From Pecten maximus (Eukaryota), in NCBI RefSeq assembly GCF_902652985.1, contig NC_047019.1:6076001-6140000 (forward strand): a stretch of DNA of 64,000 nt, written 5' to 3'. The position numbers were made by a program, and so were the translations under genes. Shown here in pieces: positions 1,608 through 51,638 of the stretch. Each line of letters starts with the position of its first letter. Within the stretch, counting starts at the first letter, position 1. The notes below the pieces were generated by a model. The model was not told where the DNA came from and did not search any database. It worked only from the letters and a program-made list of their open reading frames with translations.

Positions 1608-1759
1608 TTGTGCGTGTTGGGTACACCAGCTTAGGAAGGTGGCAATGGGAAGGGACATCTTTTAAAGAGCTGGGCGTTTTCCGAGTTTGACGTGGTGATG
1701 ATGTCACATCCGTTTCCGTATGACGATGCTCAGCCACAGAATCTTATATCAGCTGATAT
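1608..1759 (+). pseudogene. Alternative exon 2a of copy 1, with in-frame TAG
   Basis: Reads [42 protein letters not shown] at 1632-1634 corresponds to GAG in copy 4. Bounded by tag| and |gtacgt. Confidence 0.85.
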
Positions 1760-2105
1760 GTACGTGAGGTTTTCTATTTACTGCAAGTTTATCATTTTCT
1801 TTGTAATCAGATTTTCACACCTCTGAATCCCTCTTAGCAATAACACACGTCTCCTGGGGCCTGGAGTCAAAGGAAAACTCCTACCATTGCATATTTCATA
1901 AACAGCCTTGCAACCCACTATCTCAAAAGATTTACGTTGGTGAAATACCATTGAGATTCTATACCATCAAAGCTTATTGAGGAATTTTTCAACGAATGGT
2001 ATATTCTGTGTTTCTATGAATAATCCGCGATTCGACCTTGATTTCCATGAAAGAAAGACCATTCCTAACATACCTAAACTGACGATGTTGTCATACATGC
2101 TGTAG

Positions 2106-2253
2106 TTGATGGTGTTAGAAACCCCGACAGGAGAAGGAGGCGCGGGAAAATCCTTCTCGTCGATAAACACGGATTTCATAATATTGACATGGCGATAATG
2201 TCACATCCGGCACCAGGAAATGTTTTAAAGCCACCCATGCTTGCCCGTCAGAG
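2106..2253 (+). pseudogene. Alternative exon 2b of copy 1, frameshifted
   Basis: 148 nt versus 149 nt for the intact 2b at 50758-50906. One base is lost in the Gly-rich stretch and the GTPAEE motif has several substitutions. Confidence 0.8.
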
Positions 2254-2602
2254 GTTTGCGAATCTCAATATTTAATACCTACACATTTTCCGGCTTACTT
2301 GCAGTTGTATTTTAATCGGGATATATTAAGAAGGCGATCCTGAATAATCGTGCTTGCATGTCGATATGTTTGGTAGCACTGTAACATATTCAATTATATC
2401 ACTTTAAGTATATGTGTACAGTTGATATTGTCACCATCCAACATATCTATGGTCCAGTTGTCTCGTAATGCCGTCTATGCATGCAGGTTATTAATGCTCT
2501 GAATATTACGCTTCGTGTCCTTTGGGAGATTCCCTGTTTCCTTTCCTGGAATAGTCTCTATGCCAAGACTGTTCATGTTCTCATTGAAGCTATTCTTAGC
2601 AG

Positions 2603-2751
2603 ATAACTGTTATGGGGACCCCAGACGAGGAAAACGAAGGAGGTAAATTAATTTTGCTACAAAAAGAAGCGTTTGAGAAATTTGATGTAGCTATGATGTC
2701 ACATCCTGGACCGAGTGACGCTCTGCTTCCAAACACAATGGCACTGGATTG
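2603..2751 (+). CDS. Alternative exon 2c of copy 1, intact
   Basis: Reads [50 protein letters not shown]; 149 nt; cag| and |gtcagt boundaries. Confidence 0.85.
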
Positions 2752-3280
2752 GTCAGTTGTAGAAATAAATTTCCATGAATAATCATAAAAGCTGCCCGAT
2801 TGATTAGCATTATATGTATGGTTGACATGTTCCCGCCACTTCTCAATAGACATAAAAATCCTATATGTAATCAGAATACACAGATTTATTTATATCTTAA
2901 CCATTGTAGCAAGTTCTATTACTACAGAAAATGTCATACTGTTTATTATTTCAAATATGTTCCACTATACACATGTATTACATCTGATATATTTAAAGTG
3001 TCACATTTGCGGGAAAAGTTTAGATAATAGGAATGACACTTTGTTTCCAGGGTAACGGTGACCTATAAGGGCAAGGCCAGTCACGCCGCGGCATTTCCCT
3101 GGGAAGGCATCAACGCGCTGGACGCGGCAGTCACGTGCTACCAGACCGTGTCCAGCATGCGCCAACAGATGAAGCCGACATGGAGAGTCCAAGGTAATGT
3201 TTTTAAGCACTATTTCCAAAGATGACACAGAAATTGAGGTTTTGATTACTATTTCCAGTATGTACTTCTTGTGAAGTCTT

Positions 3281-3498
3281 AGGGGCTGCTATGACCGATT
3301 GGCTGAGGTGTCCCGAAACTTTATCACTAGCCCTCCACATGTCTGTCCAGAGTTCGAAACCCAAGTGGGGCAGTTACCTGGTACTGAACGTAGACCGGTG
3401 GTTTTCTCCGGGTATCCATCTTTCTTCCAACTCCTCAACCTTGCATCTCCTTAAATGACTCTGGCTGTTAATAAGACATTACATAAATCAAATAAACC
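3281..3498 (+). mobile_element. tRNA-derived SINE, degenerate copy in intron 3 of copy 1
   Basis: Similar to the SINE at 56151-56379; B-box gttcgaaac and core ggttttctccgggta. Confidence 0.8.
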
Positions 3499-5499
3499 GA
3501 TTGTTAAGAATTTAGGTACTATCTATATTTAATTTTTGTAGGATTAATGTAATTTTAGTTTTGTCATGTTCTATGAAATTGTATATATGACGATATAAAT
3601 GTAATTTTCTTGGTGTAATTACTTCTATAGGAATTATCACAAAAGGTGGAGTAAGGCCAAATATCATACCAGAAGAGGCTTCGTTGGAATATTACATCCG
3701 GGCACCAAATAGGGCGGAGCTTAATGTGCTGCGGGAAAAGATCATCGGTTGTTTTGAAAGTGCAGCAACCGCAACAGGATGCAAGGTAGAGTCCTATGTT
3801 TGAAATATATATCGTCCATATAAAAAGATTTTTATTCGACCTTGAATGAAAAGTGGCTTGATCAATAGTTGAACCAGAATAGCGGAAAATAATTAAATGA
3901 ATAAATTATAATTTTCTAGCGTTTCTTTTTTTTTTTAGGTTGAGTACGACTTTTCAGATATGCCATATTTAAATGTCATCAGTAACCAAGCTCTGGCTTC
4001 GTCATTCGAGACAAACGCCAAGAGCCTGGGGTTAGATTTCAAGAAACATGGACTGCCTGCAGACAATGTTCCCTTGGGATCAACCGATATGGGAAACGTG
4101 TCATACGTTGTTCCTAGTATCCATCCGTTCTTTTACATTGGAACAGACGAGGTCAACCACACTAGGGGCTTCACTGGGGCTACAGGTAAGGTGAATCACA
4201 CTAAGAGCTTTATTGGGGCTACATTATCTATATATTACCTACATCAATACGGTGTTTTCTCCTTTCAAAAATGTTTTGAATTAAAATCAACAATAGTGTT
4301 ATGTTTATGTCCGGAATCATTTGTTTCCGATAAGGTCCATTCCCATTCAATCACTTAGGATATATATTTGATTGTCTCTTAACGCTTCTAATTCTTACAG
4401 ACATTTCCATGCGATGAATTCAATGTTAAATCATTTAAAGTTCACAACAGTAACGTTAAGGTTTTATGAAAGATATGTGCATATGCGATCATACCTTAAG
4501 TATGGGTGTAAATTACCTTTTTATAGTGTTTCATTTTGATGCTAATTCTAGAATATTAAAACAATTTATTCATCCCAAAAGGTGCCGCTGCCGCCCAGCC
4601 GTATACCATACTACAGGGGAAGGCAATGGCGATGACAGCCATCGACGTCTTCACAAACAAAGATATTTTACCCAGAATCAAAACCGAATTCGACGATGAA
4701 CCACAGAGGAAGACTTAATTTCATATGTATGTTGGAATAGTTTATGAAAATATTAAAGCTGCGATAACATTCAACACAGCATTGCATTTTAGTTCATTTA
4801 ATTCTTCCTGATCAGTCATTAATTGTGTTGTATAATATATTGATAAACATCTGAATAATTACACTAACACAAATAAAAGAAATCGTGATTTGTTTTTGTT
4901 TTTTGTTGTTTTTTCCCCCGAATTATTAATATTTGTGAATAAACTTACTTCATGATATTCTAAATATTTTGTGTTTATCTGTCATTGTTTAACGCTACGT
5001 TTCCACATCACTTAACAGACATGCGAATCCTTCAGTCACATTATACTGACAGCCAGTGTGTTACTCGTCCTTACCGCCAACATCGAACCTGAAGATCCGC
5101 ATAAAATAGCATAAATTGTGTACAGGTGGATATTGGCTGGGTTCTGATAAATATGCAGCCTTTTCCTTTTGGTGGCATAGCTGTGGTCATCAACTTCAGT
5201 GATCTCACTTTTTGATCTTCAGGGCTGCCTAAATGGACATTGTAGAGGTATTCGTCTGCTTTGACGGATTAACTTGTGTAATGTTACGAGAATTTCAGAA
5301 TTATTCCGATATGCTAGAGATCGAAACATCCTAGAGATGTCTAATTTCAGGTTATCGTGATAAATAAAAAAAAGAATGGCTGACAGATTTTTTCATATCT
5401 TTTACGAGTAGCAGGTCTCCTTAATAGAAATATAACCCTGAACCTTTTGGACAGCCCTTTCCTGGATTCAGGTACTCCAGAGGTCCCGGGAGTCAATAG

Positions 5500-6045
5500 T
5501 TTAATAGTGACATTTTAGACAGTGTTACTCAGACGGTTTGGGCCCTAGAAAACGGCAAACTCGAATATTCCCGCGAAATTTTGAATGAGCTATCTGACAA
5601 GGTAAAACAGCGTAACAAACTCATACGTATAGCAGATACGTCAGAAGGAGGGTGGGAAACCGTACGTCAATACGAGTGTCACCCAGTAGCTAGTGATTCC
5701 GATGTTGAGAGTAAAATTTGGAGGGCAGAAGCGAGGTCGGTCAAAAAGAAGAAAGATGTGTCTCGCAAAAAATGTCAGCGTTTTACTAGCAAGTCTGCTG
5801 GGTCTCCTGCTGTTAGCTCTGGTTTCTTGGGCGGTCAGGGAGCAGCTAAACCTTTTGGACAGCCCTTTCCTGGATTCAGGTACTCCAAAGGTCCCGGGAG
5901 TCAGCCTGTCTACTCAAGGGCAGGGACATCGCATGGAGGCGGAGCGTGCTTCGGTTGTGGCGAGTTTACCCACTACAGACGGGATTGTCCGTACACAGGA
6001 GGGTCAGGAACCCCGACTCCCCCACAAGTTGTTACCAAAAAGTGA
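5500..6045 (+). pseudogene. DIRS gag-like ORF, 5' truncated
   Basis: RNKLIRIADTSEGGWETVRQY motif and CFGCGEFTHYRRDC zinc knuckle. Confidence 0.8.
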
Positions 6046-6073
6046 GAACAGAGGGACTGTTTCGCACGATGAA

Positions 6074-7851
6074 ATGGAAGATGAGTATTTTCTTAATAAT
6101 CAATTTACACGTGACTATTATGAATACGAACAAGAGGGCAAGAAAATTTTAGTAAAGGGGAGACTGAAAGAAAATTACGATTTCTGGAGAGAAATAGGCA
6201 CTAATGAGTATTTAAATGGGTATAAGATACCATTTTATTCAAATCCTGAAAGTTGTATTTGGAAAAATAACAAATCAGCATTGGCAGAGTCCGATTTTGT
6301 TCAAGAAGCCATTAGTGATCTCATGCAGAGAAATCTAATAGTGAGGTGTAGGGATATTCCACGTATTGTCAATCCATTGACAGTTTCTATACAGAGTAAT
6401 TCTAAAAAGAGGTTGATTTTGGATTTAAGAGTTGTTAACAGACATTTATGGAAGCAGTCTGTAAAATATGATGATATTCGTACAGCACTGATGTATGTCC
6501 ATAAGGAATGTTGGATGTTCAAGTTCGATATACATTCCGCGTATCATTTTGTAGATATATATTTGCCACATACGGAGTATTTAGGTTTTTCCTGGACTTA
6601 CAAAGATGGTACAACTGTTTATTATTGGTTTTACCTTTTGGGCTTTCCTCTGCTCCATACATATTTACAAAACTTTGTCGGCCTTTAATTGCGAAATGGA
6701 GAGGGGAGGGGAAGTTGATGTTGATGTATCTTGACGACGGTTTTGGATGCGGTAAAGATTTTAGTAGGAGGGTTCCTGTCAGAAAGGCAGCCAGTCTTGT
6801 GGGACAGATTATATCCATGAGTGTTGTGATAGGAAATGTTTCCCAAATTATGACCAGGTTTATCAGTATGGATATTACGCAGGCGGTTTCTTGGAATGCC
6901 TATATACAGATATCTGACGAGAGTTTATTACAGTTAAAGTTTTGGAGAGACAACGTTAACAAGGTTAATGTTAAAGTATTAAATGAGGCTGAAAACTGTT
7001 CGAAAATAGTGTACAGTGACGCAAGTGGCTCTTGTTTTGGTGGTTACGAGGTTAATACAGTGAATGGTGTGGCCCACGGGATGTGGACGGTGGAGGAGAG
7101 TGTCAAATCTTCGACGTGGCGGGAACTAGTGGCGGTGTCGAGGGTTTTAAAATCCCTTGGTAGTATTTTGATTGGCCATAGAGTGAAATGGTTCACAGAT
7201 AACACAGGGGTTTGTAAAATTGTGGAAAAGGGTTCTATGAAGCATGACTTACAGTTAGTTGCTATTGACATTTTTCATACTTGTATTAAGTATGCTGTGT
7301 CTCTAGAGATGGAGTGGTTGCCCAGGACATTAAATGAGCGGGCAGATTATCTGTCCAGGGTCTCCGAGAGAGACGACTGGGGTATTTCCATGGAAATGTT
7401 GGATATCATTGTTCAAAGATGGGGAACACTTGATGTTGATTGGTTTTCATCAGTACATAACGCTAAATTATCAGTTTATTTTTCAAGGTTTTGGAATGAG
7501 GGCTCCGCGGGGGTTGACGCGTTTGTTCATTACTGGGGCGACAGTAGAGGGTTGTTTGTACCTCCCCCCATATTGATTCTACGAGTTGTGAGAAAAATCA
7601 TTTACGATAAATCACAGGGTGTTTCGATCGTACCTTTGTGGAGATCGTCTAGTTTTTGGTCAGTGATTTGCAAAGATGGCAGATTTATATCACAAGTTGT
7701 GGATTACATAGATTTACCTACAGGGAAGGAAAGGTTTACACCATGTAAAAATGAGGTTGGTATGTTTGGTACGAAGGATTTGAATTTCCGAATGTTAGCG
7801 TTGTATATAAATTGTAAAGGTTTGAACACGGCAAACAAATTGTTACATTGA
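6074..7851 (+). pseudogene. DIRS pol: reverse transcriptase, RNase H and DAM-like methyltransferase domain; frameshift near 6620 and apparent internal deletions
   Basis: KKRLILDLR, KFDIHSAYHFV, LPFGLSSAPYIF, YLDDG (RT); YSDASG, SSTWREL, WFTDN, NERADYLSR (RNase H); DVDWF..AGVDAF..LFVPPP (DIRS MT domain). Confidence 0.88.
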
Positions 7852-7973
7852 TTGATTTCAATTATTAGGTGCATTTTTGAGGGATAATATGCATTTGTGA
7901 TTTTGGTGATTATCATACATGTACTTTGGAATATACGTGTATATATTGAGTTTGATTTGTATATATTACTTAT

Positions 7974-8180
7974 ACCGCAAGGCGAGATGTGTTTATGTTT
8001 ATGCCGCATGGCGAGATAATGCCACATGGCGAGATGATGCCGCATGGCGAGATGATGCCGCATGGCGAGACTGATACATGTGTATGCCGCATGGCGAGAT
8101 TGATGCATGTTGATGCCACATGGCGAGATGATGCCGCATGGCTAGATTGATATAGTATGTATGCCGCATAGTGAGATTGA
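7974..8180. repeat. 18-bp-based tandem repeat (tgccgcatggcgagatga) between pol and YR
   Basis: About 9 imperfect copies, visible directly. Confidence 0.85.
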
Positions 8181-8264
8181 TATTTTTGTGCGATATAACG
8201 AAATTTGTATGTTCAAATATGCTGTATATTCATTATATTTTCTCTTTTAAAAATGTTTTTTCAG

Positions 8265-16968: not shown

Positions 16969-19900
16969 ATGGCGCACTTAAAGAGAGTTGCTTGTAAAGC
17001 GATTGACGGGGTAGCTTTGAAACTAAACAAAATCAGTCAGGAATTATGGAAAAATTCAGAGATGAACTACAAAGAGCACCATGCTCACACCATACTGACT
17101 GATTTCCTGGAAAATCAAGGATTTCACGTTGACAAGAAGTACAAACTCGACACGGCTTTCCGGGCCACATTCGGAAACGATAGGAAGGGTCCACATGTGG
17201 CGGTGTTGTGTGAGTATGACGCACTGCCAGAGAATGGTCACGCATGTGGACACAACCTGATAGCAGAACTGGGCGTGGCAGCCGGGGTTGGAATCAAGGC
17301 TGCCATGGAAACATCCAGGCAACCTATCGGCAAGGTAAATGATTCCATTGATTCATGTATTATAAAATAACAACAATGTTTACTATCAATAAATATATCA
17401 ATGTAAATATGGGTCGAATTTCAATGTAACTTTTCACTTTCAATATTTTTTGGAGAATTATTGATCATTGGTTTGAAATTTAGAATCCAGTAAACATATT
17501 GAACAAGAATGCATTAAAACGTATAGTTAATTGGTCATCTATTTTGGTTATGAATTAAATTTCACTTAAGATCTTTTTAAGTATTTTTTTTTTTTTTTTT
17601 TTTTTTATTTCTTGATGGCAAAAAATGTGGAAGTGCATAGTTTTATCAAGGAAGCAATAAAAACATTAAATAAAGGAAATTTGTCAATTTTTCTTGTCCT
17701 TTTGTCATTTTGGCAAGGCACAAATATGGCAATATCACCATTATCATGTAAACAAGTACAGATAGATATAGGACTATAGTAAATGATACACAGAATGAAT
17801 AGTTTAAAACATCGCTTCGGCTGGCCGAAGGCTGTTCAGTGGACAGCTCTTGAATATTTTAATAGTAGCTGTCTTATCTTCGATGGCTGTGTCAATATAT
17901 TCAATACCTATATGTCGAACTTTATTTATATATACGACATGCATCAGCCTCGTACATTGGAAAAAATGAAAGTTTATCTGTTGGGATAATGGAACAAATC
18001 AAGCAGATCTTTGAAATCAAGAAGAAAAAAACTAACATTTTTTGTTTTTTCTAAAAAAAAAAGGCAGTAACTAGGATACATGCATTGTAACATAAAGTAT
18101 GTGATTATATCAAGTTATACTTTTTTTAAAGTGTAGAAAAAAAACAACATATGTAAAAATAAGATAAATATATGTATCAACACATGCTTTCACATTTCTC
18201 ATATGCATGTATAGGTTCATGCATGGATGTAAATGATGTAAATGATATAAATACCGTGATATACAGTACGCGTCAGGTGGTATGGTCCCCAATCACCGCC
18301 ACAGTGGCGAGGTCTAATCCCTTCCACTCACTCAGTCGGTTGCATGTCGGTTGAAACACCGGCTGACACCGGCTCAAAACCCGAGTGTTCACCTGTTTAC
18401 TGACACCGCGCGACACGGTGTGGAAGAGTGTTGGGGATTAGTGGAACAAAGGTCCTGATTCATGATTGACAGGTACACTGCCTGATACCGTGATGTGTTT
18501 GCTGGAACATACTTTGTCGTACAGTACAGGTACTCTGTAGCTGGACTTACATTTTGTACTTACAGTATCAAGAAACGTGATATATCTGATATTCACGTCT
18601 CTGCAGTATCCCAGCCCGGTGTTGAGAAAACGGGGATATTTTTTTATGTAATGAAATCACGATCTATACTAGCGATACTACAGATGCATTGTGTTGTAAA
18701 TGTACGGTACATATACACTCCAAATTATGTACGTTTTTAGTTTTTAAACCCTAGCTAGATGAGTACCACAAATGTTTACCGGGAAATCGAGAAAACAAAA
18801 CACTGTAACATTTAACGATATTTTGCCGCCTTATTGTTTGTGTTATTTATAGCAATATTGTGATTGGCGCGCGAGCGAGTAAATCCCGCTCGGCTTTCGA
18901 TTGACTTTGAAGTAAGTCTTGAATGATTAATATAATAATAACTTAACTAAAACAAAAAAAAAAGCATCTGACACTGCTGTCTGTTTATGTCCCCATTGAA
19001 CACTATACACCTGGCCTATCGTAGCACTACCATCACAAAGAATCCTGGATCTCGGAACAACTAAACCTGATATACACAAGTCTCTGATGAAATGTATCTA
19101 AACAGTTTGAACATCCTTTCGTAATATTCCGAGGTGGCATATTGAACAGAAAATATGTTATCGGTACTAGTGTATCGAGTGTACATGTGCTGACTTCACG
19201 TACATGTACACTTATAATATGCATAAGAGCCACGATATAATTATTACAATTTGACAGTTTGAGTATGAGTAGAGTTTTAAAGTAATTTTTTTCCGAATGT
19301 TAAATAAACAAAGAGTTGTCATGGTATCATTATGAAAACTTTATGAAGCCATATATATGCTCATGACCGCCTTTTTACTACCGGACGCTAATTATATAAT
19401 TAGTATATTAACCCATGAATCCAGACACGACCGCGGCTCTATCACACGCCTCGGTTACTTCAATGTACAGGCAGATACAATGTACGTATATTGTATATTT
19501 ACATAGATTCATATTAATTTCTGGTAAACTAAAAAAAAATATTTGGACGTATTACCAGAAACGCGTATTAGGGATAAATAAAATCGCTATTTACCCGTAC
19601 AACTCTCTTTTTATTCGTGACCAGTCAAGCATATCCCTTATCGAGAAGGCCTCGTCCCCTATCACACACGCGAGCACAGGTAAATCGGTCTTTGCTCATG
19701 AGGGTATCACTTCGGGGCAAATAGAGAGCTACTTATCTCTGTTATATATGTTTCTGGTATTACAAATTGTAGCACCTTTTCATTAAAATTTTTGATTTGT
19801 TCACAAGTTAAGGGAAATGTGTGCAATTTAAAAAAAATTAAGAACACAAACGATACATTTTTGTTAACGCGGCATGCATCAATAACTAGTTAAATATCGT

Positions 19901-22900: not shown

Positions 22901-25900
22901 AAAATGATGAAGCCTTCTTACAAATCTGGAGACCTATCGCTCTGCTAAATGTGAATTATGAAATTGCAATTAATGTATTAGCACCAAGACTGAAATTTAT
23001 TGATTAATTATTATGTAAATACATGATATACATGTATTAGATTAATCAGAGAAATTTCAAATAAAAGAATTATTTTCAGGTCTTAAGAAGGCTTTTGATA
23101 CTATTTAACGTGATTTTATGCTAAAGGCTGTAAAACGTTTTAGATTCGTGGAATATTTTGTGTCTTGGGTTCGAATAATGTATTATGAAATTTGTACGGG
23201 TGTATATCTAATAATAATTGTATATCGGATACTCTGAACATGATGTTAGGAGTTGTAAAAGAGTAGATTAACTGGGAAAATATAGACTATAAAATTTATT
23301 AATGGAAAAAGTGCTATAATAAATGCACTAGTTATACCAAAAATTAATATTCCTACACATGAAGCATGTTAGTACTGAACTAATTTAGGGAAANNNNNNN
23401 NNNNNNNNNNNNNNNNNNNNNNNNNNNNNNNNNNNNNNNNNNNNNNNNNNNNNNNNNNNNNNNNNNNNNNNNNNNNNNNNNNNNNNNNNNNNNNNNNNNN
23501 NNNNNNNNNNNNNNNNNNNNNNNNNNNNNNNNNNNNNNNNNNNNNNNNNNNNNNNNNNNNNNNNNNNNNNNNNNNNNNNNNNNNNNNNNNNNNNNNNNNN
23601 NNNNNNNNNNNNNNNNNNNNNNNNNNNNNNNNNNNNNNNNNNNNNNNNNNNNNNNNNNNNNNNNNNNNNNNNNNNNNNNNNNNNNNNNNNNNNNNNNNNN
23701 NNNNNNNNNNNNNNNNNNNNNNNNNNNNNNNNNNNNNNNNNNNNNNNNNNNNNNNNNNNNNNNNNNNNNNNNNNNNNNNNNNNNNNNNNNNNNNNNNNNN
23801 NNNNNNNNNNNNNNNNNNNNNNNNNNNNNNNNNNNNNNNNNNNNNNNNNNNNNNNNNNNNNNNNNNNNNNNNNNNNNNNNNNNNNNNNNNNNNTTTATCT
23901 GATTTTTAAATAGCCTATATATAATATCAGTCAAATCTCTTTCCCTCGGGATATGGATGAACCGTTTCCCTCGGCCTTGTTAAATACGTGTAGTTCATCG
24001 GGTTTGTCCCCGAGGTGAAATGAGGTTTGACTGTTGACTGAGCCATGGAACAACTTATTTTACTTGTTTGAAGAATACCAAGACATCATTTAATATTTTA
24101 TACAGAAGCAACATTCTTAATTCAGTCGGAGTATTTTCCAGAATCAACGGGTGTAAGAAAAAGCTAAGAAACAAATTTTTTAAGTAAACATTCAGAATGA
24201 CGAAAGCGTTCTAAGCATCTGCCTTTTTGGGCAAAAGACAACCATATCTTAAATGTTTTCTGATTAAAACAGTAAACACTTTAGTTAAACATGCATTATA
24301 TTGTTATCATTATTTCCACTGTAGGTGACCGTGCTGGGAATTCCGGCAGAAGAAGGAGGTGGCGGGAAAGTTATTCTCATCGACAAACACGCCTTTGACA
24401 ATTTTGATGTGGTGATGACGTCACACCCTGAGCAAACAGATAGTGTGAGGCCGAATCTGATCACCATTCAGAGGTAAGGGATTGGTGTGAGGCCGAATTT
24501 GATCACCATTCAGAGGTAAGGGATTGGTGTGAGGCCCAATTTCATTGTCATTCAGAGGTAAGGGATTGGTGTGAGGCCGAATTTGATCACCATTCAGAGG
24601 TAAGGGATTGGTGTGAGGCCGATTTTGATCGCCATTCAGAGGTTAAACATTGTCTTAGAAGACATGATCGCAGGTGATCAGACGACATAGTAAACACGTC
24701 TTTCCTTAAGGCGGACGAAGTTTGATTCCCTGACGGACTAAGTAGATAGTCCTTTCCTTTGCCATTAAAAAAAATTAGAAATGGATTTCGAACTAACGTC
24801 AAACACATCTTAACCCAACCCCCCCAAAATATATCTTTCGTGTTTGTGTTACCTACAGCAAGTCAGCTGATAATTTTTTTAAAATTACAATATGATTTGT
24901 TTTTCTTTGTTTTAAAAGTTAAAACATGTTACAGGATAATTTATACTGTGTGTTTTGTTGTTTTTTGTGAATCATAATAATTACATATCATCTGATAATT
25001 ATACTACAATATATAGTAGTGTACATGTATACCGTTGGATTTATTGTATTGTACATACATGAACATAATTTACATAGTAAATGATGTAGTATTTGTCATA
25101 TTTAGTATTTTTAGCCTAATTACTTAAGTTATAGTAGTGGTCTACTCTGTTTCCAGGGTAACCGTGACTTATAAGGGCAAGGCCAGTCACGCCGCTGCAT
25201 TTCCCTGGAAGGGTATTAACGCACTGGATGCGGCAGTCACGTGCTACCAGACCGTGTCCTGCATGCGCCAACAGATGAAACCGACATGGAGAGTGAACGG
25301 TAGCTATTTATATTTCAAGAAGCAAGTAATTTCTCCGCTATTGTTTGCTGAGAGATGACCAACCCCTTGAAGGTTTGACAGACAGTTAGTATGGGATTTA
25401 TTGACGTGATATATTGGATATCATTTCAATTTTATTTCAATTAGATGTTCGTAACTTGTCAGCCAGTTTTACCTGTTTTCACTCACAGATACTCAAAAAC
25501 TAAGCAGCCTAAGGATCATGAATAATTAAGTTATTACTCTATTATATCTAATTTGCGATTTGTAATGGAACTTAACCCTGCGTATACTTTAAATCGGCAT
25601 AGGATGTGCATAATGAATATCATATTTTAGACTTACATTTCATTGGTGAAATTGGAGACCGTGATATATAGATATAGGACGACTATTTTACGTTATTACT
25701 ATTTTTTTTTTTTTTTTAACAGGAATAATAAAAAAAGGTGGTGTGAAAGCAAACATCATACCAGAAGAAGCTGTACTGCAATATTCCATCCGGGCACCGA
25801 ACAAGACGGAGCTTAATGTGCTGTTGGAAAAGATGTCTCATTGTTTCGAAAGTGCAGCTAAAGCAACAGGATGCAAGGTATAACATGTTGGCATTCGATA

Positions 25901-37367: not shown

Positions 37368-40300
37368 ATGGCGGAGTTAAAGAGAGTCGCTTGTGAAGCG
37401 ATCGACAGGGTAGCTTTGGATCTAAACAATATCAGTCAGGAATTATGGAAGAATCCAGAATTGAACTACAACGAGCACCATGCTCACACCATACTGACTG
37501 ATTTCCTGGAGAATCAAGGATTTCACGTGGAGAGGAAGTACAAACTCGATACGGCTTTCCGGGCCACATTCGGTGACGATAGCGCGGGTCCACATGTGGC
37601 GGTGTTGTGTGAGTATGACGCGCTGCCAGAGATTGGTCACGCATGTGGACACAACCTGATAGCAGAAGTGGGCGTGGCAGCCGGGGTTGGAATCAAGGCT
37701 GTCATGGAAACATCCGGGCAACCTATCGGCAAGGTAGGCTGGAAGTAAACAAACATTTAAAAGTACGTGAATCATGCGAATATTTTCTTAAGCAGATAAC
37801 TATGTCTGTTTATTAATAAATTGTCAATAGTGTACCATCGTGGGCTGCACGATGATAATAGAAAATATGTAATAATATCGATGAATATGAATATTACGGT
37901 CTGCATTTTTATACTCTAATTGATAAGTTGATTATGTTTTTCCAATTCACAGAAATAAACTTCTCGTTTTATCACAAATATCACATTGATTTGTCACCGT
38001 CACTGAAAATGATTTTTTTTTTATCGTACAGAAGTTTGGGACAGGGCATTATAATTTACATAAATGACAAGAAGGCAGTCTGTATAGGTTTATTGTTTTT
38101 TGTTTATGTTTTTTTGGGTTTTTTTTTTTGACGATTACATAAAATATCTTCAACGACACATGTTCTAATTTCTTATATCTGTAGAATAAAGCAATTCTGA
38201 TTCTTAATTAGAACTGTGCACGGTCATCAACTAGCGTAGCTCCTGTCCGGCACACCGTTTTTTCTGCTGCCCTGTACGGGATCTTCTTCCGTTTCCGGTT
38301 CAACTTTTTCTAATGCCTAATTCCTAGTTAACTGCAATATAAATAATACTTGTATAGGAATTATACCAAGCTGATTTGGGGCGGACATTCCTTGATAGGA
38401 TATTTTGTGCCGTACATCGTGAGCTCGTAAAAACACATTGTGATTTTTTTTCATATTAAAGAAATAGGGAGTTCCAAACACAATGTATAATTGGTTAGTC
38501 AATGTAATATATGACTGTTGAGAAATAGGAAGTTCTTATTCGTGGTTTGACATTCCAGACAGTAACACACACCTTTATACTGGTATATATTAGCCTACTA
38601 TTGACTTTACTTTACTTACATGTTGTTTATATAAAATGTTTATCTAATTTTAACTTATAATTTGATAATCTGCTTGTTGGTATATACTTGATGTCTTTTA
38701 TGTGCCCCAAAGACAGTGATCTCATGCCATGGCGCAGCCTTTTTTCGTCTGGTGTCCGTAAACAATCTCTACTTGTCCTTAATAACAGAATGGATTATGA
38801 TAAAAACTCTGAAGTATTACTGAGAAAAGAATACTCAACTGTTCAATAAACAGAGAGTCTGACTCCCTGGTGGGTGGGTTTGAAGGGAAAACGGGAAATA
38901 GACGTAATCCTTTTTAATTTTTTTCTTTTGCATTGCGTAATAGATTTTTGAGTTTTTGATAAATGAACTTTGACATTAATTCAAAATTGTAATTCCAACT
39001 GAAAATTATCAAAGTTTATGATGGCATATTTGATGATGTGTGTAATGTCATTGGATGGTTGTAATTTAGGATTACGTGATTAAAATCATTTGTGTTTCTG
39101 ATTATAGCAAGAATTGGAAGGTAAATTGTTTTTATATAGCTCATAAGTATATCCTACAGAGGGGACAGAAGGGAAAGAGAATGTAAAAATGACTATTTAA
39201 GTTAATTTCTTTTTAAATGAATTTTCGCAGAGGTTTAAGATGGGAATATATTTGCTATACAATTTGAATTATATTAATTATTATTGCTGTTTAGACATAA
39301 TCCCTCAATATTTAGGTTTACTGACTAGCTGCATTTATTCATCTACTAGTTGTGCGTGTTGGGTACACCAGCTGAGGAAGGCGGCAATGGGAAGGGACAT
39401 CTTTTAAAAAGCGGCGCGTTCACCGAGTTTGACGTCGTGATGATGTCACATCCGTTTCCATATGACGATGCTCGGCCACAGAATCTTATATCAGTTGATA
39501 TGTACGTGAGGTTTTCTATCTACTGAAAGTTTATCATTTACTATGTAATCAGATTTTCACACCTCTGAATTCCTCTTAGGGCATGGAGTCAAAGGAAAAC
39601 TCCTACCATTGCATATTTCATAAACTGTCCTGCAACACACTATTTCAAAATATTTACTTTGATGAAATCTCGTAGAGATTCTGGGCTACAAGATTATAGG
39701 ATTCAATGTCTTATTGAGGAATATTTTAACATTGAGAAGCTAAAAATGTTTACAGTCGGTATATTCTGTGTTTTTGTTAATAATGCAGTCATATCCTTTC
39801 ATCCGGGCTTTGACCTAGATTCCCATGGAAGATAGAGCCTTTGTAAACATAACTAAATTGGTGGTATTGTTATACGTGCTGTAGCTGATGGTGCTAGGAA
39901 CTCGGCAGAAGAAGGAGGTGGCGGGAAAATCCTTCTCATCGATAAACATGGATTTGATAATATTGACGTGGCGATGATGTCACATCCGGCACCAAGAGAT
40001 ATTTTAAACCCACCAATGTTTGCCCGTCAGAGGTTTGCGAATCTCAATATCCCAATACCTACAATATGTTTCGGCTTTATTCGCTGCTGTTGCTTTATTT
40101 TAATCGGTATATACTATGAAGGCGATCCTAAACAATCTTGCTTGTATGTCGATATGTTTGGTAGCATATTTCACTATATCACTTTAAAGCCATGTGTACG
40201 TTGATACTGTCACCATCCAACATAACTATGGCCCCGTGGTCTCCTAATGCCGTATATGCATGCAGGTTATTAATGCTCTGAATATTACGCTTCGTGTCCT

Positions 40301-43300
40301 TTGGGATATTCCCTGTTTCCTTTCCTGGAATAGTCTCTATGCAAAGACTGTTCCTGTTCTCATTCAAGCTATTATTGGCAGATAACTGTTATGGGGACCC
40401 CAGACGAGGAAAACGAAGGAGGTAAATTTTGCTACAAAAAGAAGCGTTTGAGAAAGTTGATGTAGCTATAATGTCACATCCTGGACCTAGTGACGCCCTG
40501 CTTCCAAACACAATGGCACTGGATTGGTCAGTTGTAGAAATAAATGTCCATGAATAATCGTAAAAGCAGTCCGATTGGTTGGCATTATAGGTATTGTTGA
40601 CATGTTCCCGCCACTTCTCAATAGACATATATAATCATATATTTAATCAGAATACACAGATTTATTTATATCTTTACCATTGTAGCAATTTCTATAACAA
40701 CAGAAAATGTCGTTCTGCTGATTATTTCAAATATGTTCCACTATACACATGTATTACATCTGATATATTTAAAGTGTCACATTTGCGGGGAACGCTTAGA
40801 TAGTAGTAATGACACTCTTTGCTTCCAGGGTAACCGTGACGTATAAGGGCAAGGCAAGTCACGCCGCGGCATTTCCCTGGGAAGGCATCAACGCGCTGGA
40901 CGCGGCAGTCACGTGCTACCAGACCGTGTCCTGCATGCGCCAGCAGATGAAGCCGACATGGAGAGCCCACGGTAATAATTTTAATCACTTTCTCCATGGA
41001 TGAATCATAGACAAATAAATTGACGTTTTGATATACCTTTTCGCCATATATGTTGATACATATGGTACCCAGAGATGTTGGGGATCAGGCGAAGAGGTTT
41101 ATATAATTGATATGGTATTTCGATATATTTGCTACCAAGAGGTGTGTAGCTTTGGCGAATATGTTTATAAAATTGATATGCTAATTTTATACTTTTTAAC
41201 TTGCTCTGCCAACATTAATTGATTACTATTTCCAGTATGTACTTCTTGTGGAGACTTAGGGGCTGCTGTGGCAGATTGGCTAAGGTGTCCCGACACTTTA
41301 TCACTAGCCCTCCACCTCTGGGTTGCGAGTTCGAATCCCACATGGGGCATTTACCTGGTACTGACCGTAGGCCGGGTATCCGGCTCTCCTCAACCTCCAA
41401 AACCTGCCACGTACTTAAATGTCCCTGGCTGTTAATAATACGTTACTTAAATCAAATAAACCAATTGTTAAGAATGTAGGTACTATTTTATATTAATTTT
41501 TTGTAGGATTAATGTAGTTTTAGTTTGATCATGTTCTATGAAATTATGTTAATCACGATATAAATGTAATTTTCCTGGTGTAATTACTGCTATAGGAATA
41601 ATCACAAAAGGTGGAGTTAGGCCAAATATCATACCGGAAGAGGCTTCGTTGGAATATTACATCCGGGCACCAAATAGGGCGGAGCTTAATGTGTTGCGGG
41701 AAAAGATAATTGGTTGTTTTGAAAGTGCAGCGACAGCAACAGGATGCAAGGTAGTGCGCGATGTTAAACACATATGTTGTCCATATTAAATAACATTTAT
41801 TCGTCTAGATTTAAAATGGTAATATAAATAATTGGACCGGAGTAGCAAAAAGCAAAAAAGTATATAAATAATGGAGTTTTATTATTTCATTTCTTATCAG
41901 GTTGAGTACGACTTCTCAGATATGCCATATTTAAATGTCATTAGTAACCAAGCTCTGGCTTCGTCATTCGAGACAAACGCCAAGATACTGGGGCTAGATT
42001 TCAAGAAGCATGGATTGCCTACAGACAATATTCCCTTGGGATCAACCGATATGGGAAACGTGTCATACGTTGTCCCTAGTATACACCCATTCTTTTACAT
42101 TGGGACAGACGAGGTCAACCACACTAGGGGCTTTACTGGGGCTACAGGTAAGGTGAATCAAACTAAGGGCTTTATTGGGGCTACAGGTAAGTCAATCAAA
42201 CCTCAATATAGGCTTTATTGGTGAGGGAATTCATTGGTGCTACAGGTATGGGACTATATGTAGGTATACCCAAACACAATATGAGATTTCCTTGTGTAAG
42301 AGGTAAGATGAACCACGCGAGAGAATTCACCGGTGCTACAGCTATGGAAACCACACTAGGGGCTTCAACAAGGCAACAGGTAAGGTCAACCATACAAGGG
42401 GCTTTACTGGTACTACAGGTAAGGTCAAACACACTAAGGGCTTCATCAAGTCTATAGAATCTTACACATTTTTCAAATTTACCTTCTCTGGGACAGGATA
42501 GGACCATAGGGTATGATGTCCAAATAGGAAGTGGCTGGCTGCAAGTATTGGGCTGATAGGTCAAGTCTTCTATTGGTACCGAAGATGGAGATTCATATTA
42601 GAAAAAAACATGAAAATTGAAACAAATTTTTGATTAATATATAAATATCTTGATGAATTTTGAATCCAGACAGATGTCTTTTGGTCATACAAGAGTATTG
42701 ATATTGTACTACTAAAAAATATAAACAAATAAGATATAGCCTGAAGATGAAGGGGAGATAACTCCATGCTATCTCCCCACCCCCCAACCCACCCCTTATT
42801 ACTCGACTTAATCTAAAAAAAACTAGGACAAGAGCAATTATTTATATAATTGAGTCAAAACACACACAGGACAGTGGGCCGGGCTAGGGACAACAGAACT
42901 ACCAAAATAACCACCAAAAATCGAACCGGGGTAGTGACAACAGAACAACCAATCACATCACCGAACACCGAACCGGGCTTGGGACAAGAGTACAACCAGA
43001 AAAACCACCAAACATCGAACCGGGGTACTGTCTACAGAACAACCAGACATACTACGGGACTACAAAACACGCTTCATACAGCTACCACTGAAATAAATAC
43101 TATATTTTCGTATTATTCTGATCTATGACCCCCTTTACACTCTACACATGCCCATATTTTCATTATAAACAATCTCAGAATCTGATTTCCTGCTTAAATT
43201 CTGCCAAAATACCTTCATGATGAAAATCCCAGCCGAACATGTTCAGATGGGTCCCGTCATCTGGTGTCCAGGAACGCTGAACGGCATAAAATGTCAAATC

Positions 43301-44431: not shown

Positions 44432-44538
44432 TATCATCTGTGTGTGCGTTAATGAAAATATCAAAGTTGTGATAACATTCAATACAGCATTGTATTTTAG
44501 TTCATTTAAATCTTCCTGATCAGTCATTAATTGTGTTT

Positions 44539-45000: not shown

Positions 45001-45677
45001 TATGACATACTGATAAACATATGAATAATGACACTAACACAAATAAAAGAAATGGTGATTTATTTTAGTTGTTTTTGCCGAATTTTTAATCTTTGTGAAT
45101 AAACTTACTTCATGATATTCTAAATATTTTGTGTTAATCTATCATTGTTTAACGCTACGTTTCCACATCACTTGACACAGACACAGGCTAATCGCCAACA
45201 TTGAACCTGAAGATCCACATAAAATAGCATCAATTGTGTACAGATGGATATTGGCTGACTTCCGATAAATATGCAGCCTTTTCCTTTTGGTGGGGGTAGC
45301 TGTGATCATCAGCTGTATAGCGTTAGAATTAACACACTTGAGTTCTCACTTTTTGATCTTCATGGCTGTCTAAAATTAACACTGTAGAGGTATACGTCTA
45401 ATTTGACGGATTAACTTTTGTAAAGTTACGAGAATTTGAGAATTATTCCGATATGCTAGAGATCGAAACATCCTGGAGATGTCTAATTTCAGGGTATCGT
45501 GATACAGAAAAAAAATGGCCGACAGATTTTTTTCATATCAGTCACGGGTAGCAGGCCTCCTTAATAGAAATATAACCCTGTTTTACTGGTAATGATGTCA
45601 TAGGTGGTAGTAGATGAGCAAGAGGGATAGGTTATTCGTTCGAAGTGGTGATAGTCATCACATATACATGTTCCGAT

Positions 45678-46075
45678 ATATAGAGAATACATGGTCAGTG
45701 TCTTAAAATATAAGCTGTATTTTGGCGAGGGTAAAGAAAGACAAAAGTGGCGAGCCTTGGCGAGCCACTTTTGTCTTTCTGTCCCGAGCCAAAAATACAG
45801 CTTGTATTTTAAGACATTGACCATGTATTCTATTTATCCTGCAACAGTCATAAAAATACTTATAAAAAATAATTATTTTGAAGTGAAACGGCGTCAAAAA
45901 TGATAGAAATATGTTCGCCTTTTAAACGTAGTTTCACTTTGAAGTAGGTCAGTCGAACTGACGCACGTGCTAAGATTCCAAAATACAGCTGTTTTCCGTC
46001 ACTGCCGTATACAGCAAAAATATATACGGTGGGTGTATTCCGACAATGCGGTGGCAGTTGCAGGATAAATATATA
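45678..46075. mobile_element. Non-autonomous element with terminal hairpin (45680-45836) and a short inverted repeat at the other end
   Basis: gaatacatggtca...tgaccatgtattc hairpin; tatttatcctgcaac (45831) is inverted as gttgcaggataaata (46057). Confidence 0.7.
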
Positions 46076-47140
46076 TTGGTGATGTGCGATTCGGTTCAGT
46101 AGTCACACAGCAAGCTATACTGTATAGACAAATATAACAATAGACAAATGATAACCAGTAATCCCATTGAGATTTGAAATAGGCTGTTTATTGCAAAAAC
46201 GACATAAAATTTAATAATGATGTACATATATACAATAAATGCCTCATCACACTGACCAAAAATGCATGTAGTCATCATGATGTATACGACTATTGTAGTA
46301 GGAGAATTAGGATTGGGTGTGGGGGTAGGGGTAGGGTGTGTGAAAAACAAAACACCTCACAAAGAGTTCTGCATTGTAACTATATTCTAAACACAACTCT
46401 CTGTGGACACCACAATGCATTTACAATAGAAGCATTTCCTACACATTAATAACCTCTGGGCTGCAAGGACATTATTTGGCATTAGATGACCTATTAATTC
46501 AGTACTTTATTTACAGTAGTGTAGGTTGGGATTCCTCTATATTTATACAGATTTACAATGTACATCAACTTGATTATTTTAATATAACGTAAACAATCAC
46601 AACCTGGTAACCTATATACAATACGCACAACATGAATATTCATCCCTGTTACTGAGAATACATTATTTATTTACTATGGAAACAAATAATCAATAAATCA
46701 ACAACATTACCACATGTTGTATATGACGACATTTATTTAGTCATAATACTAAAGCGTAATTTAAGTAATTATATCTACTCTGAATTAAAACAATAAAACG
46801 TAACAGCATGACTCTTTATTACACGATATATCTACTGAACGCATTGACAAGACAAAGCGTAGTTGACTAGAATTTACAATTTCACATGAAACATTTACAA
46901 TAATATTCTTCTATAGAAAACGATAAAAAAAGAACATTTATTTCAATATACTAGTAAAAAAATGAATATTTCGTAAAGGATTACTTACATTTATGATGCA
47001 TATCTGTACTACATTTTCGACACGTATTAGAACGATTACCAGCCCGGGACTCCATACAATATTTCGGCAAGGTTGTGTATTATATATACACCACTGAACA
47101 CAATATTATCACCAACAGTTATCAGACAAACTGATACAAC

Positions 47141-50100
47141 ATGGCGGAGTTAAAGAAAGTCGCTTGTGAAGCGATCGACAGGGTAGCTTCGGAACTAAAC
47201 AATATCAGTCAGGAATTATGGAAGAATCCAGAGATGAACTTCAAAGAGCACCATGCTCACACCATACTGACTGATTTCCTGGAGAATCAAGGACTTCACG
47301 TGGAGAGGAAGTACAAACTCGACACGGCTTTCCGGGCCACATTCGGTGACGATAGCGCGGGTCCACATGTGGCGGTGTTGTGTGAGTATGACGCGCTGCC
47401 AGAGATTGGTCACGCATGTGGACACAACCTGATAGCAGAACTGGGCGTGGCAGCCGGGGTTGGAATCAAGGCTGCCATGGAAACATCCGGGCAACCTATC
47501 GGCAAGGTAGGCGGGAACAAAACAGATATCAAAATAGTAGATAAATCATGCGAATATTATCAATATATATAATTTAAGTCTGTGTTATAAGAAATATCCA
47601 GTGACCAATATAGAACCATGGTGGTCTGCATCATAATAATAAAAAATATTCGATGGTATAAATGAATTCGGATATCACGTTCTGCATTTTAAACTCTGAT
47701 TGATTGGTTGATTATATTTCTCTAATTCACAGCAATAAAATTATTTATGCATATCACTGTATTTAGTCTTCGGCGTCACTAAAAAGGTGATTTTATCTCA
47801 CAGAAATGCATACGATATTTCATAATTTGCATAAATGACAAAACAAATTTGTTTAGGAAAACTATTTTCTATGTATTCTAAAATATTCCAAAGACACATG
47901 TTCGAGTTTCTTTTCAATGAAGTGTTGCAGATACTGCAGACTTTGCACGATGCTCACCTCAATTTAAAATCTGACCGGCACATCCTTTTCTGATTCCCTG
48001 AACGCGTTCTCCTTCCACTTCCAATCAATTTTTCCCAATGAAGCTCCGCCTGCTTCATATCCAATAGAGTTAAGATGGTACTTGTAATTTTTTAGTGTTT
48101 GATACATGTCAGTAGTGAATGTTATTTACCGTCCTGAATGTAAACGTTTGCCAGCTACCTACAAAGTGATTTTCAATCATACAAGATTATAAATAATACT
48201 TGTATATGAGTTATGCTAAGCTGACTTGGCATAATAGTAAAAGTAAGTAAATTGTTTTCTTCATCATTTGGTTTTCTATGTTATATCCAAATACAAAATA
48301 CATTGTCGTTAACAATAAAATCTTGTTGATCCGCAGATACGAAATACGAATTTGTGACTGTTAAGAAATAGGAAGTTCTCATACAGTGCTCGCTGTCTAA
48401 CATTGCAGACAGTATATTACATATTTATAACCGTATTTGTTAATATATAATACACTTACTTCACTTACATATTGTTTATATAAAATGTTAAACATTTATC
48501 TCATTTATCTTATAATTATTAATCTCCTTATTTGTTTATCGTATGCCATTATGTAGCGTCCGACGCCCGTCTGACGTTCTTAAACAATCGCTACTTGTCT
48601 TGGAAAGCTGAATTGATTTTGACCAAATTAAGTTTGTAGCATTATTCAAGCCGATTGTCTCACTTTCCTCGGGGTTGGTCGGAAGATGATAGAGAGAAAA
48701 GGACTAAATATGTCATTCTTCCTTGGTATTGTCTTGCTCATCTCCACTATTCAAGGCCTCTGATCACGTTTCACTCCACGTTCATGGAGTGAAAGGTAAT
48801 CAGAAGCCTTGGCTAGCGATGGTGGTCGTGTTTAATTTTTGAGAATTTCTTGGAGTATTTAATAGAAGAATTTTGATAAAAAAGAACAGGGAATACATGT
48901 ACTAACAATAAAACATAATCGAATTCCTATTCAAAGTTGTTAGAATGAGGTCAATTTATAACACAAATACAGATTAGCATATAGGCCCCAAAGAAATTGA
49001 CCATATGTTCAGGAAGAGTAAGCGTTTTCTGCTACCCTCGACGACACCAGCCATGCAAATTTAGATCAAATGAGGTATGTATCCTCATTGGGTGAATGTT
49101 TCAATGATAGAACTATTAACGTATGATGGTTTTATGTATGTATGTTCTTCTGATAACGAATGCATTTTTATTTATGCCTTATCATGACTGTAGATGTAGT
49201 TTATAAATATGTATGAACATGTAGCACTACTTAGTAAAGGTACTGATATACAGCTATCCATCTTTGCTCGGATAATATATATAAAATGTCTATCTTGTCA
49301 AGATATCTAGGTGAATGCATGTATGCTCGTTAAGAAACATGTTACGATTAAATGCTTGAATAAGTCAACTTTTAATGTCTGACTGACGTGTATAAATGTT
49401 TTTTTCTGATTATTTTCCTACATGTATAATCTTGGTTGGGGATAACAGATCAAAAATAGGTCTTGTCAAAATATCTAATTAAATGCATGTATGCTGCTTG
49501 ACTTGTGTGTGATGACATTTGCTATGATTTGATGATTGTATAGTTGAATTTTGCATGTATACATGGTTTTATTATTTAAAAAAAAGAATGAAAATGTCTT
49601 TCTTCTCATCCTTTGTCAACTATATCAATTATAAATAATTCAAAAGTATATCCCACTTCTAGAGGGCGAGAGGCGGGCCTGATAGGGGAGGTGGAGTCCT
49701 TTTCAATAAGGATTCCTTTGGATCAGCTTTCAAGTAAGAAACCAGCTGATTCGCGAACAAACTCCCTAACATCCCGAGTATTCAAAGTTTTTTTTATAAA
49801 CGATTTTTATTGTCGAAACTGAATTTTTGCTTCGAGTTAAGAAGCCTTTGAATAATCAAAGTTCGATATAACGAAGTTTGACTATAGCTATCAATTATTC
49901 TGTTTCAATCCGTTTACTTTTTTCTGACTTTTTCCTGTATGTCAACGCTTCTAGACATTAGCATCACCTCACCGACGTGCTATAGAAGACACTAGCAGAA
50001 AGCACGTGCAGAAGATGCCGTCGTGAAAACTGACGAGTGATATAAGTGATATTTGACTCCTGTGAAATTCCCTGACTGCATATCATGACGATATATTGTA

Positions 50101-51638
50101 AAATATTTTCATGGATATGGCCAAGGTATCCAATTCCATAAGCATTAGGTTAGGAACATTGTATTCTATGTTCGCGTACAATTTATCTAAGATTGCTTTC
50201 TTTATATATCTTCAATTGTTAAGATGAAAAATGAGACTTTATCAATAATTTCCTAGCTTTTGTTTACAGTCAGTATATTCCTGTGTGTTAAACAAAACTA
50301 ACCTTTGAGTCCCGATTTCGCATGTATTTGCAAGGCGGGTTTGGTCGATGATAACCTTTGAGCCGCGGGTAAATTTACGTGGTGGGTGTCGTTGATGATT
50401 ACATTTGAGCCGCGAATATATTTACATGGCGGGTGTCGTCAATGATTACCTTTGTGTCGCAACTATATTTGCATGGCGGGTGTCATAAATGATTTCCTTT
50501 GAGTCGCGACTAGAAGCAGACGTCGCTTACCTTTCCATTGGCTTATTAATCTCGTACTTTTTCAATGGTCTATAAATCAATATATTTTGCAAATTATTTA
50601 CACTAGGTTGAATTTGATTTCTTTTACATAATCTCCTCGATGTCTACTACTAAGAACGAACGGAACATATCTTATTGAATTACTTATCATCATCGATTAG
50701 AATGTCCATTCCTTTGTAAACATACCTTAACTGATGGTCTTGTTATACATGCTGTAGTTGATGGTGCTAGGAACTCCGGCAGAAGAAGGAGGTGGCGGGA
50801 AAATCCTTCTCATCGATAAACATGGATTTGATAATATTGACGTGGCGATGATGTCACATCCGGCACCAGGAGATGTTTTAAAGCCGCCCATGCTTGCCCG
50901 TCAGAGGTTTGCGAATCAATGCTTACAACCGTCACAGTCTTGATATAGCATGCTTTCATATTTTCCTTCTTTTAATGCTGTTTCACCTTGTATTATTCTA
51001 ATCGGGACCTGCTTTGAATGAGATCCTAAACCATCTTTCTTGCATATCGATATGTTTGGTAGCGTTGACATATTCACCTATATCACTTTAAGTATGCATG
51101 TACACTTCATATTGTCACCCTCTAGCACATCTATGTCGTGCTTTTGGAGACATTCCCACTTTCCACTCCTGGATTAGTATGCTTTTGTTCTCATTAATCA
51201 AAGCTATTCTTGGCAGATAACTGTTATGGGAACACCAGACGAAGAAAACGAAGGAGGTAAACTTATTTTGCTACAAAAAGAAGCGTTTGAGAAAATTGAC
51301 GTAGCTATGATGTCACATCCGAGGCCGAGTGACTCTCTACTTCCGGGCACATTGGCACTTGATTGGTCAGTTGCCGAAATAAGTTTTCTTAGAATAATCG
51401 TTAAAGCTGTCTGATGTTTTGATATCATATTTCTGATTTTCATATATTGCCACAACATATTATCACCTTATTTATCTCACTGTGATTCATTTCAACAGAT
51501 AAAACTAACACCCTTATTTAATCGGAATGTATTTTTTTTACCATTTTACTAATTTTTGTAACAACAGAAATGTCATATTGATGTTTGTAATGATGCTCCA
51601 TAATATAAAAGTGTCACCTTTTAATGAACAAGCTATAT

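Follow-up and report, generated by a model that had tools for sequence, protein, structure and literature searches.

Two or three divergent versions of the exon that encodes an enzyme's catalytic centre, lined up between a single first exon and a single third exon, raise the question of whether they are alternatives from which one is chosen for each transcript or the decaying leftovers of exon duplication. We address this question for a 64,000-nucleotide (nt) stretch of DNA from the scallop Pecten maximus (contig NC_047019.1, positions 6,076,001 to 6,140,000; hereafter the window, in whose numbering positions are given unless otherwise indicated), the plus strand of which comprises five tandem PM20D2-like M20 dipeptidase genes, copies 1 to 5, of six coding exons each. 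An initial annotation of this stretch, made from the nucleotide sequence, had proposed that homologous second exons, or cassettes, in copies 1, 4 and 5 are included one at a time and exchange the catalytic pocket of the encoded peptidase. From the analyses reported here we regard the locus as quite probably an old cluster of mutually exclusive exons that has been partly split among Pecten duplicates, the tuning of substrate or metal preference being the part of this interpretation that we infer.

Tandem second exons and their isoforms in scallops

Homologous cassettes of three types, designated 2a (152 nt), 2b and 2c (149 nt each), occur between a single exon 1 and a single exon 3 in copies 1, 4 and 5 (Table 1). 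A tblastn scan with both copy 5 cassettes, combined with DNA alignment of all 10 copies of exon 2, verified the coordinates, splice dinucleotides, phases and peptide motifs initially assigned to them, all of which proved correct: every cassette, relics included, is preceded by AG and followed by GT (the dinucleotides only being considered), is entered in phase 0 and, when intact, is left in phase 2. The exon encodes a Glu-Glu pair and a metal-binding His, within a GTPAEE...HP segment held in common with human PM20D2. An interpretation of the cassettes as separate gene fragments was ruled out, since a single exon 1 and a single exon 3 enclose them and their splicing regenerates RefSeq coding sequences exactly.

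The five RefSeq proteins XP_033739662, 663, 664, 665 and 666 correspond to copies 4, 2, 3, 5 and 5, respectively, with 99-100% identity to the window. Exon 1 of copy 5, joined to either 2b or 2c and then to exons 3-6, yields XP_033739665.1 (isoform X1) or XP_033739666.1 (isoform X2) with every residue identical, and the differences between these two proteins are confined to residues 123-172; the two intact cassettes originally attributed to this copy are thereby matched exactly by catalogued isoforms. For each Pecten copy, RefSeq lists as many isoforms as there are intact cassettes.

The initial annotation had also suggested that other molluscs be searched for the same cassettes, and these were found in three further scallops. 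A single gene of Mizuhopecten yessoensis has three RefSeq isoforms (XP_021355348-50), as does a single gene of Argopecten irradians (XP_069102682/89/97); in both species the isoforms differ in the exon 2 segment only, represent 2a, 2b and 2c, and measure 399, 398 and 398 residues. Two isoforms of Ylistrum balloti (XP_060068348/49) correspond to 2b and 2c. Among the best hits, each of these three scallops was represented by only one switching gene. At the level of catalogued isoforms we consider the mutually exclusive reading well supported: one-at-a-time use of homologous exons bearing the EE and HP motifs, first proposed for Pecten, is reflected in RefSeq isoforms that differ only here in Pecten, Mizuhopecten, Argopecten and Ylistrum.

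These isoforms are already catalogued in RefSeq, as unannotated computational models; alternative isoforms in the NCBI pipeline require alignment support. Literature searches on PM20D2 or Xaa-Arg dipeptidase in connection with mutually exclusive exons returned no description of the switch. The earlier remark that no description of it for PM20D2 was known agrees with the published literature, from which no paper was recovered, but did not extend to the isoforms in the database. What is new in relation to RefSeq is the recognition of homologous, mutually exclusive exons spanning the catalytic centre, and of Pecten paralogs that split the cassettes between them.

Table 1. Exons, cassettes and related features of the PM20D2-like array (window positions).
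Feature	Position	Strand	Remarks
Copy 1 exon 1	451-815	+	1-nt deletion near 642, frame shifted
Copy 1 cassette 2a (relic)	1608-1759	+	152 nt; TAG at first catalytic Glu (1632-1634; G-to-T substitution)
Copy 1 cassette 2b (relic)	2106-2253	+	1-nt deletion; first Glu replaced by Gly
Copy 1 cassette 2c	2603-2751	+	149 nt, intact
Copy 1 exon 3	3051-3193	+	
Copy 2 exon 1	16969-17334	+	
Assembly gap	23394-23893		In intron 1 (7 kb) of copy 2; exon 2 follows after 431 nt
Copy 2 single exon 2 (second gene lineage)	24325-24473	+	XP_033739663.1
Copy 2 exon 3	25157-25299	+	
Copy 3 single exon 2, 2b type	32058-32206	+	XP_033739664.1
Copy 4 exon 1	37368-37733	+	Prefix of XP_033739662.1
Copy 4 cassette 2a	39350-39501	+	152 nt, intact; sole cassette in RefSeq XP_033739662.1
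Copy 4 cassette 2b (relic)	39885-40032	+	Lacks 1 nt; premature stops; splice dinucleotides retained
Copy 4 cassette 2c (relic)	40382-40526	+	4-nt deletion, premature stops; AG/GT kept
Copy 4 exon 3	40829-40971	+	
Copy 5 exon 1	47141-47506	+	122 codons, phase 0 end, donor GTAGGC
Copy 5 intron 1 segment at position of copy 4 cassette 2a	48623-50710	+	Without 2a homology; short dispersed repeats (genome-wide matches)
Copy 5 cassette 2b	50758-50906	+	149 nt, intact; RefSeq isoform X1
Copy 5 cassette 2c	51217-51365	+	149 nt, intact; RefSeq isoform X2
Copy 5 exon 3	51771-51913	+	143 nt, common to both isoforms; start of M20 dimerisation (lid) domain
Copy 5 exons 4-6	52095-52249, 52401-52647, 53426-53562 (stop included)	+	

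Conservation and selection of the cassette types

Across genera, cassettes are 76-84% identical within a type, compared with 41-51% between types. A tree of cassettes (51 columns) recovered the 2a and 2c clades with 100/100 support and the 2b clade with 97/78. Fourteen cassette columns are invariant, among them G, P, the EE pair, K and HP, and ten, at positions 123, 130, 135, 138, 142, 143, 164, 169, 171 and 172, are fixed within each type and different between types. The initial annotation had foreseen that neutral evolution of the extra cassettes, with a ratio of nonsynonymous to synonymous substitution (dN/dS) near 1, would speak against their use; intact pairs in the window gave 0.16-0.21 (0.16 for 2c of copy 1 against 2c of copy 5), and the two 2b relics, in copies 1 and 4, gave 0.54, all of these values deriving from 149-nt sequences with few substitutions. 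Each type thus appears to have been maintained by purifying selection across the four scallop genera, and we reason that the cassettes are in use, because unused exons would not be expected to keep their reading frames and their catalytic and type-specific residues over four genera.

Frame dependence of inclusion

Because the cassettes measure 149 or 152 nt, inclusion of two of them, or of none, shifts the frame and leads to an early stop, a consequence already pointed out in the initial annotation and confirmed by splicing copy 5 in silico: transcripts with both 2b and 2c terminate at codon 173, and those with neither at codon 128. In both cases the last junction is situated more than 50 nt downstream of the stop, and transcripts of either kind would probably be removed by nonsense-mediated decay. 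Steric exclusion is unlikely because the introns between cassettes span 310-383 nt, and the reading frame is the only enforcement mechanism shown. A search for docking or selector structures yielded only weak, AT-rich inverted repeats of 22-23 nt, 73-78% complementary, that are common to copies 1 and 4, themselves close paralogs. In copy 4, and in the same way in copy 1, one such pair (39487-39508 and 40746-40767) has its halves in the 2a donor region and in the intron that follows 2c, and another (39546-39568 and 40027-40049) in the intron that follows 2a and at the 2b donor. These repeats may be structures that control splicing, or may simply reflect chance complementarity within AT-rich introns.

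Predicted consequences of the exchange

The genes of the array are firmly assigned to peptidase family M20, as PM20D2-like members with predicted dipeptidase activity. Whole proteins containing 2a, 2b or 2c score above the curated Pfam cut-offs for both PF01546 (Peptidase_M20) and PF07687 (M20_dimer, the lid domain); a single 49-residue exon is too short for such a comparison and gave no Pfam match. Human PM20D2 (PDB 7yh4) matches the scallop protein at E=8e-122, and cassette 2b of copy 5, taken alone, matches residues 175-217 of the human protein at E=4e-8. An AlphaFold2 (AF2) model superposed on the human PM20D2 structures 8zel and 7yh4 with template modelling (TM) scores of 0.90-0.92, a root-mean-square deviation (rmsd) of ~2 Å and 47% identity. 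Residues H91, C93, H95, E131, E132, H156 and H345 (H346 in 2a protein numbering), which make up the HxCGH, EE, H and H signatures, are invariant in 82 homologues, and the catalytic and metal residues of exon 2 are present in every intact cassette. By analogy with the M20 enzyme Sapep, whose metal ligands include Glu150 and Asp173 (PMC2937973), the first Glu would act as the general base, and the second Glu and a residue some 24 positions further on as metal ligands.

In the AF2 model of the copy 5 2c isoform, the predicted local distance difference test (pLDDT) score is 91-97 over the cassette, which begins with a strand (122-128), continues through the loop bearing Glu131-Glu132 and a helix (136-142) to a pair of short strands around His156, and closes with a linker that enters the first strand of the lid; the lid domain itself starts at the exon 2/3 boundary, with PF07687 beginning at residue 171-174. 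Mean pLDDT is 93.9 for the 2c protein and 95.0 for the 2a protein of copy 4, and secondary structure is alike across the cassette. Isoforms of one gene present an identical scaffold; of the 50 residues that surround the metal centre and hinge, about half are different. The type-specific changes comprise Ala versus Asp at 130, a Gly-rich loop at 133-138, Arg, Lys or Leu at 164, and the hinge at 169-172. Because these changes flank the catalytic residues, the exchange could plausibly alter substrate preference, metal preference or the behaviour of the hinge; most likely it would tune substrate or metal preference.

Probable partition of cassettes among Pecten duplicates

The initial annotation had credited copies 1 and 4 with three cassettes each. 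Three homologous exons are present in both, but the extent of decay had been understated: because their other cassettes carry lesions (Table 1), each copy has a single usable one, and four of the eight cassettes across copies 1, 4 and 5 are broken. Among the genes of the window, copy 5 alone can still switch, and in copies 1 and 4 the additional cassettes are relics. Homology between the copy 5 and copy 4 introns ends at 48622 and restarts at 50711, and the 2a region of copy 5 is occupied by unrelated, repeat-bearing sequence. No relic of 2a was found on searching copies 2, 3 and 5, and none of 2c on searching the introns of copy 3.

Trees of the constant part place copies 1, 3, 4 and 5 in one clade inside the lineage of scallop switching genes (support 89/87, or 80/83 without exon 1), and the introns of copies 1, 4 and 5 are ~78-80% alignable. 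The simplest reading, which we hold with moderate confidence, is one of duplication in the Pecten lineage with complementary loss of cassettes. The second coding exon would have been tandemly triplicated in a scallop ancestor, its copies diverging into types 2a, 2b and 2c; exactly one cassette would be spliced into each mRNA, and one gene could give up to three enzymes. In the Pecten lineage the three-cassette gene would then have been duplicated into copies 1, 3, 4 and 5, with copy 4 fixing 2a, copy 3 fixing 2b, copy 5 keeping a 2b/2c switch and copy 1 retaining 2c only.

Exchange between paralogs has left its own traces. Synonymous divergence (dS) between copies 4 and 5 is 0.025 in exon 1 and 0.61 in exon 3, a contrast indicative of recent gene conversion restricted to the 5' end of these paralogs. 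Window positions 1-820, containing the promoter and exon 1 of copy 1, are 97% identical to 30224-31042 in copy 3, and the rest of copy 1 is ~80% like copy 4; copy 1 is thus a recombinant or converted chimera, and it is probably a pseudogene.

A second, single-cassette lineage (support 96/92 and 99/95) comprises copy 2 together with copy 0, a sixth paralog located ~12 kb upstream of the window (contig position 6063844 onward; XP_033739340.1, 314 amino acids), the RefSeq model of which skips exons 2-3 because they fall in a second assembly gap. In the cassette tree (51 columns), the only exon 2 of this lineage (copies 0 and 2 and their orthologues) joins cassette 2c with 89/94 support, and the lineage may derive from a duplicate of greater age in which a 2c-like cassette was retained.

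Alternative explanations

Several points weigh against an old exon cluster partitioned in Pecten. Mutual exclusivity rests on RefSeq models, and protein alignments from other species could have seeded some of these. The Pecten-specific clade has only moderate support, in an array where gene conversion is at work. Errors of assembly could account for the single-base deletions, an explanation less likely for the nonsense substitution, the Glu-to-Gly replacement and the 4-nt deletion. To these may be added the shortness of the sequences from which dN/dS was calculated, and the dependence of the predicted functional change in isoforms on sequence and models.

Were the cassettes decaying leftovers of exon duplication, with one fixed exon 2 per gene and the RefSeq isoforms artefacts of modelling, the broken state of four of the eight in copies 1, 4 and 5 would be accounted for. 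Both cassettes of copy 5, however, are intact, with good splice sites and dN/dS of 0.16-0.18; all types keep open frames and their catalytic and type-specific residues over four scallop genera; and isoform pairs differing in this segment only are found in a brittle star and a sea cucumber as well (see below). We judge this explanation highly improbable. A possibility that we take more seriously, while still thinking it rather unlikely, is that the switch is real and alters some property other than substrate range, such as metal preference, pH or temperature optimum, hinge dynamics, stability or tissue-specific regulation. It would fit with catalytic residues that never vary, with the location of several type-specific positions (164-172) in the linker or strand leading into the lid domain and not beside the EE loop, and with the control of activity by open/closed domain motion in a related M20 enzyme (PMC2937973); yet further type-specific changes, at 130 (Ala to Asp) and in the Gly-rich loop (133-138), directly flank the Glu-Glu pair.

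Two further explanations concern the history of the array. Three of the lesions (exon 1 and 2b of copy 1, and 2b of copy 4) consist in the loss of 1 nt from a short run of C or G, as might be produced by assembly errors in genes that all still switch among three cassettes. Such errors would not readily explain the G-to-T nonsense substitution in 2a of copy 1, the loss of the catalytic Glu from its 2b, the 4 nt missing from 2c of copy 4, the raised dN/dS of the 2b relic pair (0.54), or the single RefSeq protein of copy 4, which uses 2a, and we consider it highly improbable that all three genes switch. It is also unlikely, if less decidedly so, that the paralogs are older than the scallop radiation and have been homogenised by gene conversion, so as to look Pecten-specific, with cassette losses that are correspondingly old. 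In favour of such a history are the clear traces of gene conversion at exon 1 and the promoter and the moderate support of the clade; but the clade survives removal of exon 1, the introns of copies 1, 4 and 5 are still ~78-80% alignable, and the other three scallops each have only one switching gene among the best hits. Duplication in the Pecten lineage, followed by complementary loss from an ancestral set of alternative exons, remains the interpretation that we prefer.

The same exon in other lineages

Isoform pairs that differ in the homologous segment only were identified in two echinoderms, the brittle star Amphiura filiformis (XP_072039172/77) and the sea cucumber Apostichopus japonicus (XP_071815123/24). 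In the cassette tree (51 columns) those of Amphiura pair with each other, and those of the caenogastropod Batillaria attramentaria fall with Littorina, neither grouping with the scallop types; this topology points to independent duplication of the exon in the brittle star and Batillaria lineages. The Apostichopus cassettes form long branches without placement. The Batillaria model (KAK7483295.1, KAG5696808.1) contains two exon 2 cassettes in series, separated by a few bridging residues, and is probably a mis-modelled pair of alternative exons. For annotation, tandem cassettes are best treated as alternatives and not, as in this model, read serially.

We advance, as a tentative proposal that may well prove too broad, that the exon of the catalytic centre is a recurrent hot spot of duplication, converted into a switch in scallops and, it seems independently, in a brittle star, that each cassette has its own substrate range, and that Pecten, in which 2a, 2b and 2c would be passing to different paralogs, has been caught in transition from isoforms to genes. 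If true, a single gene would encode several enzymes of metabolite repair or dipeptide salvage.

Relation to known exon clusters

Cases in which mutually exclusive exons swap a segment carrying catalytic residues are, to our knowledge, scarce, and hardly any has been tested; COQ-2 offers the best example. The closest described system is the pair of equally long exons 6a/6e of the COQ-2 polyprenyltransferase, which are mutually exclusive in helminths, annelids and molluscs and whose two variants have been proven genetically to serve ubiquinone versus rhodoquinone synthesis (PMC7434440). As in COQ-2, the scallop exons are tandem and homologous, the system is molluscan, and the swap remodels the enzyme core while the remainder of the protein is identical; unlike COQ-2, the exon has up to three variants, itself carries the catalytic and metal residues, has a functional effect that is predicted, and occurs in variants partly spread over Pecten duplicates.

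Tandem homologous exons of which one is included at a time are also the hallmark of arthropod clusters such as Dscam1 and muscle myosin heavy chain, and for myosin, lineages alternate between exon clusters and multiple genes (PMC3912159). The scallop cassettes share with these clusters their tandem homology and, in the RefSeq models, one-at-a-time inclusion. Dscam has tens of variants, chosen through pairing of docking-site and selector RNA (PMC3912159), unlike the scallop cluster with its 2-3 variants, introns of 310-383 nt and inverted repeats that are only weak; "Dscam-like", the term first applied to the locus, accordingly overstates the resemblance for a cluster of this size, in which the search for docking/selector RNA pairing gave only those repeats. 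Human PM20D2, a beta-alanyl-lysine/Xaa-Arg dipeptidase (7yh4, 8zel), has the same family and fold as the scallop enzyme. The solved human protein, unlike the scallop genes, carries one version of the segment, and literature searches, which covered publications and not the human gene itself, turned up no exon alternatives for it; nor did they locate an open paper on the human crystal structure.

The scallop genes offer three matched enzyme variants on one scaffold, conserved over scallop genera, as a system for studying the specificity of the M20 metal centre. Within 64 kb, the Pecten array would further present alternative isoforms turning into separate genes through complementary cassette loss, and so constitutes direct material for the long-discussed trade-off between splicing and gene duplication.

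Other features of the array

In copy 2, splicing of exons 1, 2 and 3 preserves the reading frame and gives the beginning of XP_033739663.1. This copy has one exon 2 in the assembled sequence, its intron 1 being interrupted by the gap at 23394-23893; claims regarding copies 1, 4 and 5 are independent of that gap. The same chromosome also bears two distant paralogs, both with a single exon 2.

In copy 3 the RefSeq model employs a donor 7 nt upstream (exon end 32199, not 32206) and an acceptor at 32739, which is 16 nt upstream of 32755, with a gain of three residues; the join at positions homologous to those of the other copies (32206/32755) is likewise open.

In copies 2, 3 and 5, an exon end and its GT donor are tandemly repeated in units of 39-42 nt (multiples of three). 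These repeats extend over 24443-24643 (4.8 units) at the end of copy 2 exon 2, over 34182-34692 (13 units) at the end of copy 3 exon 5, and over 52612-52772 (4 units) and 52815-53256 (11 units) after exon 5 of copy 5. They amount to ladders of potential in-frame donors, of which RefSeq takes the first.

Two other features were noted in the window. Between copies 1 and 2, an open frame on the plus strand (6508-7851) has a faint reverse-transcriptase match below the Pfam cut-off, and downstream of the array a sulfotransferase-domain exon lies on the minus strand at 59265-59774.

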